From the sequence record MW749003.1: a stretch of DNA of 64,000 nucleotides; one strand, given 5' to 3'. Shown here piece by piece: positions 19,311 through 25,705 of this stretch. A program made the position numbers and the translations under genes. The notes under the pieces are model-generated. The model was not told the origin of the DNA. It saw nothing but the letters and a program-made list of their open reading frames with translations, and did not search any database. Numbering within the stretch: position 1 is the first letter of the stretch; each line of letters opens with the position of its first letter.

Positions 19311-22025
19311 TTAGATATAATTAATTGTTATCGTATGTGTATAATACTGTTCAACACCCAAATCAGTATTATTTGAAGATAATTGCTTTCTTAGGTTTAA
19401 ATATTCAGGTACATAATCAATAATTTCTTGTTTAGTCATATCTAAGAATGATGAATGACTAGATTCAATCTTTTGTACAACTTTATCATTAATTGAATTA
19501 AACTCAATATATCTTATGATATCAAAATTCTCTTCTAATCGTCTGATTAAATTAGAAATAGGGAAAATTTCTTCATCATTACAGCTTTCTACAAAATCTG
19601 AAATATAGCTTTTAATTGCAATATCTGTTTCACTTGTAACGGCATTATTAGCGTATATAGTGAGATTAAGGTCAAGATCAATTCTATCCAGACCCTTTAA
19701 TACATACTTATTCTGAGTACTATCCCAAACTTTTCCTGTATCATACCAAGATGATTTACCATAAGTGTTATAAAATTTAACATCAATACTTGTATTATTC
19801 TCAAGTTTATCCATATTGTCCGTTAGAGATAAAATAAATTTATCCATTAAATCATAGACTAACGGATAATTATATTGAAAATAAGTATATTCAATTAATG
19901 GAATCGATTTTAATTTAAAACCACTTTCAGTTGGAAATATATTACTCTCAATTACATTAGACATATTTGAGAATAGATTTATAGGATCATCATTTCTTAG
20001 TAGGCATACTACACCAAAGTCTGTCATATCTGGCATTTTTAATACGTCTGTAGTCTTTTCAGTACTAAAATCATTTTTATAGAGAATTACAACATCAAGA
20101 TTAACATCACTATCAATAAATGCATTTTTAACAGTAGTCATCCCTTCATTATCCAAAATAGGGCTTGAATCAAGAGTATAAAGACTATTATAAATATTCA
20201 ATTTGTTATTGCTAATTGAATTCCACTTTTCTGTTGCTAGATATCCTTCATATAATAACTCTGTATCACTAGTTCTATTGAAATCAAAATAGCCATATAT
20301 TTCCCCATTAGTTGATTTGAGTATCCCTCGTATCTTAACATTATCATCAAAATTGTCATCAATTAAGTTTGTTACAAGTGATAGATTAAATTTATATACA
20401 TCTTCTGACATATTATCTCTGGTTAAATCAAAAGATGATACCATAAATTGATAAGGAATACTTGGATTAATATAATTATAGGATAAGCTAACATCTTTAT
20501 TTGCATGAGTTTTATAGTAAATGGATGATAAAACAGGATCCTTTTCTACTTTAATAAGATAAGGAATTGCATATACTAAATATTTTGGATTATTAAGATA
20601 TTCTTCTACCTCTAATTTGTGCCAAACTATAAAATAGATATCATTTTCAATATCATAAATTACTGCACTATTTTCTGGAATAATATAATTATTATTTGAC
20701 ATTTCATTATTACTAATAAATAATGAAGGAATAGTTGTTGTTGGCATCACCATATTCTCATTGTTTCTCAAAAGAATATATGAATTCCATAGTCTCTTAA
20801 TTGCATCATTTCTCTTTTTAATGAACTTAATCTTACTGTTATTTATCTTATCAGAAGAATTAATCTTATTGAAGTATAAGTCTAGGTCATAATCTGTAAT
20901 AAGATTATCTCTCACTAAATAATCTTCAATTAATTTATTTTTAATATCAGCATAAGAAGGTTTATCAGCACCTCCAGAAGCATCAGTAATAGGTTGAATA
21001 TAAATAGGTATTCTACCCATTTCAGTATCATTTAGATAGTTGATAAGAATTTCTCCACTAAATGAGAAATTAGCAGTTGATCCGTCAGTAGTAAATATTT
21101 CTACTTCTAAAGTTGAATTAAAACGTGGTCTGAAATTATTTGGTAAGGCAGAAAATGATATTTCGATTTTATTGTCATCTATAAAAGTATAATAACAATA
21201 CTTTTCATCTTCAGGAGGTGTATAAGTGTTATTAAAGTAAGTTTTTAATAATTCACGTTCTCCATTATATGTGTAGTATACATTAAAATAGGCAAGTTGT
21301 CCTTGATAATTAATATCATAAAATAAATTTTCCGATATATCTTCTGATGAGACAGTGATTGAACTAGTATCTTTTTCCATTTGATAAATATCTACACCCA
21401 TGAAAATATATTTCTCACCATTATAGTTGGCTTCCCATAGTTTTAGATAGGGATTCTTAACTGTAAAAAATGGAAAAGTAGATTCATCGTACATGTATCT
21501 AGCGATTACACTATAATCATTATTAACATTATTTGCCTTAAAGATTAATTGAATTGGAAATGGAATCATGAAATTATAATCCCCAACACTAAGCAAATAA
21601 TCATTATTTATGATAAACTCATAAGCACTATCAGAATCTGATAGATTCTCATCTGAATCAATTTTTCTAAATTTTGTACTATTTATAACATCACTTTTCT
21701 TTACACTAAAGTTAATCTTCATATGTGATGGTGTTGCCATAGAGATCTGTGAATTTTGTACTTTAGCAAAATTATAAATAGATTTTGGAATAGATGCTGT
21801 GTTTAGGAAATGTTCATCATACAGGATATTTCTATGATAAATATTATTCTTTATCTCATTAGACATAACTTCATTATTATATCCAAATAAACCTGCTTTA
21901 AGTAAACTAATACTCACTTCATCATTATCATCAATTCCAAAATATTTTTTAGCGATTTCTAGCCATTTATCCTCAATGCTATAAGATGTATTATTGACTG
22001 TTATAATACTATTCTCTTCTGCCAT
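19311..22025 (-). CDS. Baseplate wedge protein (T4 gp6 / baseplate J-like)
   Basis: TDASGGADKPS...RDNLITDYD motif; 904 aa. Confidence 0.7.
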   Translation of the reverse strand: MAEENSIITVNNTSYSIEDKWLEIAKKYFGIDDNDEVSISLLKAGLFGYNNEVMSNEIKNNIYHRNILYDEHFLNTASIPKSIYNFAKVQNSQISMATPSHMKINFSVKKSDVINSTKFRKIDSDENLSDSDSAYEFIINNDYLLSVGDYNFMIPFPIQLIFKANNVNNDYSVIARYMYDESTFPFFTVKNPYLKLWEANYNGEKYIFMGVDIYQMEKDTSSITVSSEDISENLFYDINYQGQLAYFNVYYTYNGERELLKTYFNNTYTPPEDEKYCYYTFIDDNKIEISFSALPNNFRPRFNSTLEVEIFTTDGSTANFSFSGEILINYLNDTEMGRIPIYIQPITDASGGADKPSYADIKNKLIEDYLVRDNLITDYDLDLYFNKINSSDKINNSKIKFIKKRNDAIKRLWNSYILLRNNENMVMPTTTIPSLFISNNEMSNNNYIIPENSAVIYDIENDIYFIVWHKLEVEEYLNNPKYLVYAIPYLIKVEKDPVLSSIYYKTHANKDVSLSYNYINPSIPYQFMVSSFDLTRDNMSEDVYKFNLSLVTNLIDDNFDDNVKIRGILKSTNGEIYGYFDFNRTSDTELLYEGYLATEKWNSISNNKLNIYNSLYTLDSSPILDNEGMTTVKNAFIDSDVNLDVVILYKNDFSTEKTTDVLKMPDMTDFGVVCLLRNDDPINLFSNMSNVIESNIFPTESGFKLKSIPLIEYTYFQYNYPLVYDLMDKFILSLTDNMDKLENNTSIDVKFYNTYGKSSWYDTGKVWDSTQNKYVLKGLDRIDLDLNLTIYANNAVTSETDIAIKSYISDFVESCNDEEIFPISNLIRRLEENFDIIRYIEFNSINDKVVQKIESSHSSFLDMTKQEIIDYVPEYLNLRKQLSSNNTDLGVEQYYTHTITINYI

Positions 22026-22036
22026 TGTGTCTCCTC

Positions 22037-22969
22037 CTATTTAAAGAATTTAAGTTTAAATGTTGTCTTTGGATGTAGAGAATCATTTTCATAAGGATCA
22101 GTTTTAACAACAAGAACTTTAGTTGCTTTCACATTAGATTCAGTAAAGTTATAAGGTAATAAATCATTCGTTGTATAGGGAATAACACCTTTATTAGAAC
22201 CTTCAGTTGAATATCTTAACGCTTCAGAATCTAATGTTGCTACTTTATTAAAGTCCATAAGGATTGCTGGATCTAGATCTTCTTTGAACGAGTAACTATA
22301 TTCTACTGATATTTCTGGAATATCATGATCCTTGCCATCAGTTGCTAGGTTAGCATAGGGAACTGAAATAGGAACTGCACCAGTATATTTAGAGAAATAT
22401 AAAATAGTCTCACCATCAAAATCTAAAAGAAAGTAGTAAATTGAACTCACATAGTCTAAATATCTCTTTTTTATAGCATCTTTTGAAGGTGAAAATGTAC
22501 CACGTCTTACATTTTCAGTATATTCTACCCATGCCTTATGTAACTTAATAATGGGTAGACTTTTATATTCCTCAAATTTAACAGTAGTAGTATCACCAAC
22601 TAGACTATCTACAAGTGAAATTGGTAAAGTTTGTTTATATCCATAGAATGTTTCTCCAACATCAATTGTCCTTGCCGCTAAATCCTTACCATCCATTCCT
22701 CTAAATGCATTTGTTAAAATTTTAATAAATGGACTAACTGTTTTTCCATTAGTAGTTAGTGCATTAAAAAGATCAGGTTCTAATGTTTCTAAATACATTA
22801 GAAAACTATCTCTTCGAGTGTTAAGTTTATCTAGATTTAATTTTGGTGTAGTAATAAAAATGTATGGTATACCTTTTACTAATACATCATGATCTTTTGG
22901 ATCTCCTCTTCTATATACATCATATTCTTTGATTATATCAATATGAGGATATAAGTTGAACTCAGACAT
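22037..22969 (-). CDS. Tail-tube-fold virion protein
   Basis: AWVEY...YTGAVPISVP...ISVEYSY pattern; late motif 22996-23007. Confidence 0.55.
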   Translation of the reverse strand: MSEFNLYPHIDIIKEYDVYRRGDPKDHDVLVKGIPYIFITTPKLNLDKLNTRRDSFLMYLETLEPDLFNALTTNGKTVSPFIKILTNAFRGMDGKDLAARTIDVGETFYGYKQTLPISLVDSLVGDTTTVKFEEYKSLPIIKLHKAWVEYTENVRRGTFSPSKDAIKKRYLDYVSSIYYFLLDFDGETILYFSKYTGAVPISVPYANLATDGKDHDIPEISVEYSYSFKEDLDPAILMDFNKVATLDSEALRYSTEGSNKGVIPYTTNDLLPYNFTESNVKATKVLVVKTDPYENDSLHPKTTFKLKFFK

Positions 22970-23032
22970 TTATAAACCTCCTAAAAGCGAATCTTTATTT
23001 AATTGTTCTAAGTAAAAGAAAACTCATTTTTC

Positions 23033-23045
23033 AAATATATATTAT
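23033..23045 (+). promoter_or_regulatory. Early promoter 13-mer
   Basis: Exact AAATATATATTAT. Confidence 0.7.
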
Positions 23046-23170
23046 AAGAATGTTGAAGTAAGTAAATATCAGAGTATATAGACCTTAATAAATCTCTAAA
23101 TAGGAAGCATACAACCACCTTGATGACGCTTCCGCTTCTTCAACATATAAAGATGGAGGAAGATAAACTC

Positions 23171-23218
23171 ATGTTTAAGGCATTAAGAACAGTATTGTCA
23201 ATCATTGGATTACAATAA
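23171..23218 (+). CDS. 15-aa micro-peptide MFKALRTVLSIIGLQ
   Basis: GGAGGA RBS 10 nt before ATG, downstream of an early promoter; not in the ORF track. Confidence 0.5.
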   Translation: MFKALRTVLSIIGLQ

Positions 23219-23392
23219 ATTGGGAACCCTAAAACTAGGTTTATATACTATAACGCCATTAGCGATTAAGTTCGCTAATGGCAAATAGGTGGTTATATTT
23301 TTTTATTTTTTTCTTTTCCTCCTTTGTTAACAAATAATTAATGCTAAATAAATATCATTTAATAATGATAGAAAGGAAAGGTTGAGAAACGA

Positions 23393-24655
23393 ATGGATAT
23401 TAATACACTAATGAATTTTATCTCTGCTTTCGGTTTCGGAAAAGATTTAAATAAAGATAAATCACCGAGAACTAAAGATTGGGAGACTGCGGCTGAAATT
23501 CTTGGCGCTACAGCTACTGCAAGAAGAGGTAGTATTAAATATAGAGCAAAAGATTTAATTGCTCACTATCCTGTTTTATTTTCTGATAATCTTACTTCTC
23601 ATTCAGTACAGCTTGTAAATCGTGCATTAGAGCATGAATATGTAAATATGTTAAAGCTACTTATTCAAAATGATGGTGCAGACGGTTTTGAAAATACTGC
23701 ATCGTATTTAAAAGGATACCATCAAAATATTAGCCATGATGCAAATCTTGATTCTCATTTATCTAAAAGTACAGATGAACTAGAAAGAAGATTTTCAGAG
23801 TCTGTAATTACTGAAAATGATTTAAGAGATGCTAATAAAAAATTACTTGAAAGTTTTAGTGATGATTTAAACCTTCAAGTATTAAATGATTCTACTGTTA
23901 GTAAAGAATATAAAAATTTATTAGAAGATAAAAAAGATGATTCAAATAACAAAAAAGTTGAAAAAGAATTATCTGCAAAACCAAAAATTGATAATACAGA
24001 AATTAAAAAAGCAAATGAATTAACTCCAACTAATGTTTCTGTGGATATTGATTATGAAACTAATAATGGAACAGTTCATAAAACTATCTCTTTTGGAGTT
24101 AAATGTGTTGCTCACCTTCTTGATTCTCAAGATATCGAGTATTTTCTCCCAAATGCTGTAATTACTAAAACACCAATCATGCGTATGATTCAATGGACAT
24201 CAGGGGAGATTAAATTCTTTAAAGATTTCTTATTTTCTATTGATGAAATTAAAAGAACTGCTGTTAAATCAAATGATAAAAATAGCTTCTGGTGGAGAAA
24301 ACTACAAACAATCTCAAAAGTAGCTCATGCTCGTCCTTCTTTATTTGCATTAAGTAAAGGAAGAAAACTAGGAAAAGCCCCAATTCCTACTTCTACAATG
24401 GTAATTAGTAAAGAAAACGTAGACAATATTCGTCATAAACATGGTATTGATCTTCTTGCAAAACCTTCATTTGTTAAGAAAATTATGAAAAATTTCTTCT
24501 TAATGACTTTTATCATTGTTGATGAAAGTATTGAAACAGTGTATATCTTTAATGAAGATACTGGTGATTTCAGTCATTATTCTTTCAAATCATTAGAAGG
24601 CTTTTCAAAACAAAAAAATATTGATATAAAAGATATTTATAGTCTTTTAAAATAA
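23393..24655 (+). CDS. Putative virion head protein
   Basis: 420-aa ORF; late motif 23329-23340. Confidence 0.55.
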   Translation: MDINTLMNFISAFGFGKDLNKDKSPRTKDWETAAEILGATATARRGSIKYRAKDLIAHYPVLFSDNLTSHSVQLVNRALEHEYVNMLKLLIQNDGADGFENTASYLKGYHQNISHDANLDSHLSKSTDELERRFSESVITENDLRDANKKLLESFSDDLNLQVLNDSTVSKEYKNLLEDKKDDSNNKKVEKELSAKPKIDNTEIKKANELTPTNVSVDIDYETNNGTVHKTISFGVKCVAHLLDSQDIEYFLPNAVITKTPIMRMIQWTSGEIKFFKDFLFSIDEIKRTAVKSNDKNSFWWRKLQTISKVAHARPSLFALSKGRKLGKAPIPTSTMVISKENVDNIRHKHGIDLLAKPSFVKKIMKNFFLMTFIIVDESIETVYIFNEDTGDFSHYSFKSLEGFSKQKNIDIKDIYSLLK

Positions 24656-24670
24656 GAGAGGTGAATAAAA

Positions 24671-25705
24671 TTGTTTGAGAAGAAGTTAACTTTATTAGAG
24701 CAGGCTGATGAATTTTTAAGTAATGCAATAGTCCGTAAAGAAACGAATTGGAGTCCTTATAAAATCAAAGTATTAGACGAAGAAGTAAAAACCACTATGG
24801 TTGATAATATTGTAAGTTATATGTTCAATGATGTAAGACAAAAAGCACTTGCCGTTGATTTTGCTATTATAGACAAATCCAAAGGTGATGTAACTACATT
24901 AAGAAACTTTGATACAATTGAAAGAGCAATTTATTTTATTAAGGTAAAAGGAACTTTTAGACAAAAAGATAATGCGGAAATTGTTAGAGCTGTAAATGAA
25001 CTAGATTATGCTTTAAAAACTTTAATTAAATATAAAAGTGATTTTAAACGTGGATTTGCTCTGAATGATTCTCTTTCTCGTTATCTCTATAACTCTATTG
25101 TAATTGCAATTATTCAAGGTTCGTCTTATCTAGTTGCGGAAACTATTGAACTTATGAAGAGCATGCATGGTTATCAAATAAGAGCAAACGACCAAAAAAC
25201 TTTATTTAAAAATAATCATATTAAATCAATTAGTCAATTTAACCAGATGGAAAGAAATGGTCAATTGTCTAAATTATTTAAAGAATCACACAATCTTGCT
25301 GAAAATGCCCTTTTAAATGTTGGTAAGGATGTTGCTAAACGTCTAGGAACTCTTAGTGGTGTTACTAAATGGATTGCTGTTCTTGGTCTAGTTGGATTTT
25401 CACTTACATTTATTAGAAGTATTATTTTCTTGTATTTTAATTCAAGAGTTAAACTATCTCAATATCTCTTACATTTAAAAGAATTTGTAGAAATGAATGC
25501 ATCAACTATTGAATCAGATGGAAAGAAAGTAAAAGAAAAACAAGAAAAGATTGCTCAAACTCTTGGAAAATTATCAGATCGTATTAGAGTTGACCAAAAT
25601 GTTGCAAATGATAGAGCAAACAATCAACTTGAAGATTCAAATAGAATTATTGCATTAGATACTAAAGATTCAGATGATAGTACTAGCAGTTTAAATTTAT
25701 ACTAA
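24671..25705 (+). CDS. Putative virion protein with a hydrophobic segment
   Basis: ORF with RBS GAGGTGA; WIAVLGLVGFSLTFIRSIIFLYF. Confidence 0.55.
   Translation: MFEKKLTLLEQADEFLSNAIVRKETNWSPYKIKVLDEEVKTTMVDNIVSYMFNDVRQKALAVDFAIIDKSKGDVTTLRNFDTIERAIYFIKVKGTFRQKDNAEIVRAVNELDYALKTLIKYKSDFKRGFALNDSLSRYLYNSIVIAIIQGSSYLVAETIELMKSMHGYQIRANDQKTLFKNNHIKSISQFNQMERNGQLSKLFKESHNLAENALLNVGKDVAKRLGTLSGVTKWIAVLGLVGFSLTFIRSIIFLYFNSRVKLSQYLLHLKEFVEMNASTIESDGKKVKEKQEKIAQTLGKLSDRIRVDQNVANDRANNQLEDSNRIIALDTKDSDDSTSSLNLY

Follow-up and report, generated by a model that had tools for sequence, protein, structure and literature searches.

The window analysed here is a stretch of 64,000 nucleotides from sequence record MW749003.1. 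Over positions 22000-24700, it matched Bacillus phage vB_BspM_Internexus at 100% identity and AR9, PBS1, and Goe21 at 98.5-98.7%, the 98.6% figure stemming from the far half of g214. The window belongs to the Bacillus jumbo phage Internexus, a member of the AR9/PBS1 group, and AR9 coordinates were converted into window coordinates by subtracting 158672. Jumbo phages of this group begin infection with a polymerase carried in the virion, and most of their early products have no assigned function.

The element under study sits in a 423-bp gap that separates two divergently transcribed virion genes, the g213 homolog on the minus strand (22037-22969) and the g214 homolog on the plus strand (23393-24655). 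We noticed that the former is labelled merely "virion protein" or "hypothetical"; the Pfam family PF23971 (Phage_TTP_15) found in its relatives points to a probable tail tube protein. The AR9 dRNA-seq tables place the start site of g213 at window 22997/8 on the minus strand and give g214 a late start site of its own (AR9 182012, window 23340). In the AR9 tables, expression of g214 was 0.69, 20.7, and 1427 at 5, 20, and 40 min, that is, purely late. Besides the early start described below, they list no further start site between the starts of g213 and g214. The late promoter of g214, AACA-N6-TA, was retained in 11 of the 13 copies of the locus that we compared and was altered in L115 and L116, the two most divergent loci (L numbers are used where loci have to be told apart). 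As a side observation, the whole promoter block TAACAAATAATTA (23330-23340) was near-invariant in 11/13 homologs, the identity of the g214 protein going down to 38%. All features that a sequence-only reading of this stretch had named are present where it placed them.

An early RNA of about 240 nucleotides

The element opens with a promoter for the virion RNA polymerase, AAATATATATTAT, at 23033-23045 on the plus strand. It agrees with the early consensus published for AR9, AAATATATATTAT-N6-G, the AR9 record carries it as an annotation, and the motif was retained in 13/13 homologs. Transcription starts at the G at 23052, six bases downstream of the promoter. Indeed, Lavysh et al. 2017 mapped a primary 5' end by dRNA-seq at AR9 181724, which is window 23052, and its TEX enrichment of 3.87 is the top value among the early start sites (PMC5312081, Table S2). 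The early promoter proposed from the letters alone was thus borne out by the consensus, by the AR9 annotation, and by a mapped start. The same table assigned this start site to g214, as a 340-nt UTR (PMC5312081, Table S2).

The read evidence consisted of assembled contigs, which carry no strand information except at poly(A) junctions and cannot prove the absence of a transcript. In an early-looking run of the 2017 RNA-seq study, one contig covered 23122-23291 at a depth of 629, and short contigs with a depth of up to 1375 stopped at 23291 or 23293 and then continued with 23-24 non-templated A. Depth was 0 over g214 and about 8 over g213, and from these values we infer that the run is an early sample of the AR9 data set. 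In the Sharma dRNA-seq protocol, RNA is reportedly tailed with poly(A). The AR9 paper used this protocol (PMC5312081), so the poly(A) junctions at 23291 and 23293 mark 3' ends of plus-strand RNA. Taken together, the contig ends and the zero coverage of g214 indicated a separate early RNA of 240-242 nt (23052-23293, plus strand), and not a 340-nt leader of g214. An independent early structured RNA, as first read from the sequence, is therefore upheld: its ends are mapped, the early promoter is used, and g214 is not entered.

In a late-looking run of the same study, g214 had a depth of 137 and nothing was seen over 23027-23254, a gap that contigs cannot turn into proof of absence. We noticed in this run contigs that begin near 23266, inside the hairpin called P4 below, cross a T-rich run and the late start at 23340, and enter g214; these could reflect late read-through, a decay fragment, or an extra late start. 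Two food-fermentation metatranscriptomes each yielded separate, mismatch-free contigs at 23061/67-23227, and the coverage gaps on either side of them ruled out plain DNA carry-over. The contigs of these two independent data sets both end at 23227, 9 nt past the stop codon of the reading frame described below, which might reflect RNA processing at this point or a break in the assembly at the strongly paired 3' domain. Incidentally, the contig of depth 629 has a C at window 23161, the second base after GGAGG, where the window and the AR9 GenBank record have an A. A variant in the phage stock, a mistake in the assembly, or base modification could account for this; L114 naturally carries a C at the matching position.

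A covarying fold with two pseudoknots

Beyond the window, we found 12 syntenic homologs, that is, 13 copies in total. One is in the B. pumilus phage BpSp, whose g214 is 56% identical, and the others are in metagenomic relatives, namely one JGI metagenome contig and ten contigs reached via protein relatives of g214 with 79% down to 38% identity. The g213/g214 arrangement was preserved in all 13 copies. The element measured 244-260 nt up to the T-rich run, and 304 and 333 nt in the two most distant copies, and its nucleotide identity was at least that of the neighbouring gene in 10 of 12 comparisons. It was also 100% identical across seven sequenced isolates, an observation that we rejected as evidence of constraint because g213 is nearly identical too (1 difference in 933 nt). 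In DNA pattern scans of IMG/VR, AR9 alone matched both patterns, and a scan of a genome collection with the g214 alignment gave no match. Searched with a covariance model of the RNA, the window and the AR9 genome each proved to contain one copy only, and neither Listeria phage LPJP1 nor any of nine distant IMG/VR relatives gave a match. Searching Rfam at a permissive threshold returned only sub-threshold matches on the wrong strand, the best being CyaR, whose 27.5 bits fell short of the gathering threshold of 47. The RNA family and the family of peptides that it encodes are both new and are unannotated in all seven sequenced genomes.

Comparing the copies revealed five helices, all on the plus strand (RNA positions are window coordinates minus 23051). 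P1 pairs 23052-23058 with 23138-23144 (RNA 1-7 with 87-93) and thus opens at the first transcribed base; 94.8% of alignment cells paired and 5 of its 7 pairs were changed on both sides. A slightly longer 5' helix, 23050-58 with 23138-46, had been claimed. It is real and shows compensatory changes, but only 23052-58/23138-44 lies inside the RNA. P2, a 13-bp long-range helix that the earlier reading had not described, joins 23073-23085 to 23237-23249 (RNA 22-34 with 186-198), with 93.5% of cells paired and 8/13 pairs double-changed. The P3 hairpin (23103-23133) has a 6-bp stem, 23103-08/23128-33 (RNA 52-57 with 77-82), and a 19-nt loop; five of the six pairs were double-changed. Here, 65-77% of cells paired, the lower value coming from alignment shifts, and direct reading together with a script found the stem intact in Internexus, BpSp, L107, L116, and L117. 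The helix PK joins the P3 loop to the 3' tail, 23113-23120 with 23287-23294 (RNA 62-69 with 236-243), its strands in the window being AACCACCT and AGGTGGTT; 95.5% of cells paired and 5/8 pairs were double-changed. In L117, it was wholly different in sequence yet still paired, GACCGTTGG with CCAACGGTC. Last, the P4 hairpin (23255-23282) has an 11-bp stem, 23255-65/23272-82 (RNA 204-214 with 221-231), with 99.2% of cells paired and 7/11 pairs double-changed, and its loop, TTAAGT, is conserved. The P3 stem, the loop-tail pairing, and the 11-bp stem had each been called from one sequence, and each showed compensatory changes in homologs. Covariation in relatives, which that reading had named as a check, was found across 11-13 homologs.

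These figures did not depend on one alignment. In a plain MAFFT alignment of 11 copies, 91.8% of 487 cells were standard pairs, and only 36-41% were when partners were slid by 1-3 columns. Both sides had changed in 30 of the 45 pairs, and compensatory cells numbered 64 versus 18.1 +/- 3.5 after shuffling, none of 500 shuffles reaching as high. In a model-based alignment, 93.3% of cells paired. The covariance model behind it held P2, P3, and P4 only, and P1 and PK, which lay outside it, paired nonetheless (94.8% and 95.5%, with five double-changed pairs each). Across both alignments, slid controls gave 36-42% of cells paired versus 92-93% for the five helices. The two most distant copies had all five at matching positions. 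A blind scan of all column pairs recovered P1, P2, PK, and P4 and no other substantial helix; it missed P3 through alignment shifts and showed no conserved structure over the Shine-Dalgarno (SD) and ORF stretch. We also observed G-U pairs, for instance at one P2 position in six copies, which would be A-C mismatches on the opposite strand. Since they suit the plus strand only, they indicated that the plus strand is the functional one.

The five helices share no nucleotides and are thus mutually compatible. Both P1 and PK cross P2, and PK also closes the P3 loop, so that two pseudoknots arise. Both RNA ends are predicted to be base-paired, the 5' end in P1 and the 3' end in PK, and the only long unpaired stretch is RNA 94-185, which holds the SD and the ORF. 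Folding programs that ignore pseudoknots picked different helix subsets in different species, and single-sequence folding gave z-scores of about -4.6 for either strand. Two unpaired motifs were near-invariant, namely the P4 loop (TTAAGT-like) and an A-rich TAATAAA after P2. Three further ideas were rejected. Mimicry of the 16S anti-SD and SD by the loop and tail did not hold, for the BpSp (GGCGG) and L117 sequences are unrelated there. A tertiary contact between the P4 loop and the CUUAA that follows P2, judged by reading, fitted 3-4 copies and failed in others. Retention of the purine-rich 5' strand of P3, which might have made it a functional SD mimic, was equally well explained by transition-only covariation.

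The T-rich run (23296-23311, plus strand) lies directly after the PK strand and is probably part of the termination signal. It was present in 13/13 homologs, 0-10 nt past PK. A scan of 22900-23450 for a canonical intrinsic terminator, that is, a GC-rich hairpin with a T-run within 0-2 nt, found none: the run is 13 nt away from P4. By reading of the 3' ends, it is the PK helix that lies within about 3 nt of the T-run in 8 of 13 copies. The mapped 3' ends fall 9-11 nt past P4 and within the PK strand, positions that P4 could also have set on its own. The 3' end has two readings, either termination at the T-run followed by trimming back to the fold, or release set by P4 and PK.

A conserved micropeptide frame and its proposed control

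An SD sequence, GGAGG (23155-23159), stands 11 nt before the ATG of a plus-strand ORF of 15 codons plus stop (23171-23218). An SD-like site was present in 13/13 copies, with a spacer of 7-11 nt to an ATG or TTG, and the ORF had 14-16 codons in 12 of them and 20 codons in L117. Examples of the peptides are MFKALRTVLSIIGLQ in the window, MFKLVRIIVSLING in BpSp, MRKLIEAIIIALSLR in L111, and MRKLIKTLLLLLSY in L114. The mean pairwise BLOSUM62 score per site was +1.20 in frame versus -1.30 and -0.97 in the other frames, which contained 31 and 17 stops versus none in frame, and none of 2000 column shuffles reached the observed coding score. Comparing the window with BpSp, we found synonymous codon swaps involving several bases (Arg AGA/CGT, Ser TCA/AGT). 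Codon position 2 was the most conserved and was T in 58% of cases. The claimed ribosome-binding site and 15-codon ORF therefore recur in all 13 copies with a coding signature.

A Lys or Arg at peptide position 3 was invariant, and a Ser-Leu/Tyr-Arg/Gln ending was common. GRAVY values of the peptides were 0.8-1.6, and their net charges lay between +1 and +3. The helical hydrophobic moment exceeded that of shuffles in about 4 of 13 peptides only, so the family is hydrophobic and cationic, and the description of the peptide as amphipathic does not hold. Fifteen residues is short for a membrane-spanning helix. Peptides of 14-16 residues are also too short for protein search tools; Pfam and PHROGs searches were made with the 20-residue homolog and returned no family. 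A second candidate ORF, which extends across P2 and P4 and has 27 codons in the window, was discarded, as reading of the intergenic sequences showed its frame to be lost in L110.

The RNA had been proposed to act as a switch, two anti-SD elements masking the ribosome-binding site. The column-pair scan of the alignment found no conserved helix involving the SD site, and the predicted partners of the SD varied from copy to copy. The first element, 23135-41, overlaps the 3' strand of P1 and showed no conserved pairing. The second, TTCCTCC at 23316-22, occurs in 1 of 13 copies, lies beyond the mapped 3' end, and is part of neither the early nor the late RNA. With neither element conserved and one of them outside the RNA, the switch finds no support. 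A late promoter on the minus strand, producing an antisense RNA that would shut the gene off late, had also been suggested. The motif, AACA-N6-TR, was seen in 3/13 copies, solely where the ORF starts with ATG-TTT. These codons generate the motif on the opposite strand, so it is a by-product, and the dRNA-seq tables contain no minus-strand start site between AR9 181670 and 182012. Both the antisense promoter and the antisense shut-off thus lose their basis.

These results bear on a type I toxin-antitoxin-like module, in which a toxic membrane peptide would be silenced by the fold and by a late antisense RNA. Some peptides of the family seem to recall in style the very short Ibs toxins of E. coli, and a small hydrophobic peptide on a structured RNA with long-range end pairing fits such a module. 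Type I toxins are described as small hydrophobic peptides of under 60 aa with an alpha-helical transmembrane domain (PMC6562991). The likeness to type I toxin mRNAs (hok, aapA1, tisB; bsrG and bsrE in B. subtilis) lies in a short hydrophobic peptide on a compact structured RNA whose 5' and 3' regions are tied together. In contrast with these mRNAs, the peptide here has only 14-16 residues, too short for a standard membrane span, and belongs to an immediate-early gene of a lytic jumbo phage, transcribed by a virion RNA polymerase into an RNA with two pseudoknots. Against the module itself stand the lack of any minus-strand start in AR9 181670-182012, the presence of the late motif in only 3/13 homologs, and the lack of a conserved anti-SD helix. 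Hence, the type I organisation first proposed found loose support as regards a structured RNA with its ends tied by long-range pairing, and fell as regards an antitoxin, which was not found at the locus, and the occlusion of the ribosome-binding site. Because no antitoxin RNA was found at the locus, type I membership is not shown, and we judge it improbable.

Another possibility was a long 5' leader of g214, that is, an attenuator in which translation of a leader peptide controls read-through into the virion genes. The Leu/Ile/Val-rich peptide does resemble some attenuator leader peptides. The 340-nt UTR assignment of Table S2 (PMC5312081) also speaks for this reading. However, a conserved late promoter of its own serves g214, which is silent at 5 min, and the RNA stops at 23291/93 with nothing downstream in the early-looking run. 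Moreover, the spacing between the stop codon and the following helix is not fixed, homologs having anywhere from about 17 to about 97 nt there, and in L115 g214 is separated from the element by an extra early promoter and a 154-residue gene. Attenuators are recognised by alternative pairings and conditional read-through, and we found neither a conserved alternative pairing with the ORF nor early read-through. We therefore regard a leader role as very improbable indeed.

What the RNA and its peptide may do

The account that we find moderately likely is that of an end-protected early mRNA for a probably membrane-directed micropeptide. The virion RNA polymerase starts at 23052 and yields, from a separate immediate-early unit, an RNA of 240-242 nt ending at 23291/23293, which would take one compact five-helix fold with P3 within the P1 domain. 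P2 would join this 5' domain to the stretch downstream of the ORF, giving a pseudoknot with P1, and the tail of the RNA would pair with the P3 loop, giving the second. Such a fold may mainly shield the message from removal of the 5' pyrophosphate, from 5' exonuclease, and from 3' exonucleases, and it may assist non-canonical 3' end formation. The TEX value of 3.87, the highest of the early starts in Table S2, fits a 5' triphosphate shielded by P1. The finding of no RNA body in the late-looking run sits uneasily with extreme stability, contigs being unable to show absence.

If translated, the ORF would give a hydrophobic, cationic peptide of 14-16 residues, as predicted from its codons. It would most likely insert into or lie on the host membrane, or bind a host membrane protein, a targeting suggested by GRAVY values of 0.8-1.6 and a net charge of +1 to +3. 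The peptide might then serve as an early take-over, exclusion, or anti-defence factor.

The fold has parallels in the 5'-terminal stem-loop stabilisers and 3' terminator hairpins of Bacillus and phage mRNAs, as a helix from the first base and a structured 3' end should block decay that depends on the 5' end as well as 3' exonucleases. Here, however, a loop-tail pseudoknot takes the place of a simple terminator in holding the 3' end, and a 13-bp long-range helix links the two end domains.

The complexity and conservation of the fold also go far beyond the apparent needs of a 45-nt coding region, and the P4 loop and the TAATAAA after P2 are near-invariant. This raised the possibility of a bifunctional or purely regulatory RNA, wherein the scaffold itself acts, for example on a protein or RNA of the host or the phage that it binds or titrates, and the ORF is secondary or untranslated. 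RNAIII/hld and SR1/SR1P are precedents for the union of coding and regulatory roles. Dual-function sRNAs such as S. aureus RNAIII/delta-toxin and psm-mec, SR1/SR1P, and E. coli SgrS/SgrT likewise consist of a structured RNA of a few hundred bases with a tiny ORF, here predicted to be translated, and the products of RNAIII and psm-mec are small membrane-active peptides. Unlike in these sRNAs, the peptide here is shorter, the element is encoded by a phage, and there is no relationship in sequence or in Rfam. An untranslated ORF is opposed by the codon swaps, by the lack of in-frame stops in 13/13 copies, by an SD in 13/13, and by the conserved length, and a regulatory RNA is opposed by the lack of an Rfam match. 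We thus hold this explanation to be possible but doubtful.

A further reading, which we put forward tentatively and consider unlikely, is that the knotted RNA is itself an effector, such as a decoy or platform for a host RNase, a ribosome component, or a defence sensor in the first minutes of infection, and in addition encodes the shortest conserved phage-encoded membrane peptide known. If this were true, it would be a bifunctional immediate-early RNA, of a kind not described in phages.

Whichever applies, the locus contributes a conserved two-pseudoknot RNA fold and a conserved 15-residue peptide at a start site that the sole paper noting it had filed as a leader. It offers a tractable case for the survival of phage messages in Bacillus given paired ends, for 3' end formation by a non-canonical RNA polymerase without a standard terminator, and for what so short a peptide can do to a host cell. 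The thirteen diverged copies are a ready design for compensatory-mutation tests.

Finally, we noticed other cargo in the same slot. In Staphylococcus phage S6 (L119:900-1440), an unrelated early unit with the same early promoter consensus lies upstream of the g214 homolog; in it, a hairpin begins at the first transcribed base, the ORF is hydrophilic and has 44 residues, and the terminator is of the hairpin-plus-T type. Listeria phage LPJP1 (L014:1939-2420) has an early-promoter-like site, followed from the second base by a 12-bp helix (1954-65/2172-83), and, immediately ahead of a strong terminator, a possible hydrophobic ORF of 12 codons (MKALIGLFIKDY); this unit, which the covariance model does not detect, may be a distant analogue of the element. 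In the metagenomic relative L115 (860-1500), a second early promoter and the 154-residue ORF follow the element before g214, which indicated that the slot can take further early cargo. The slot appears to be older than its content.
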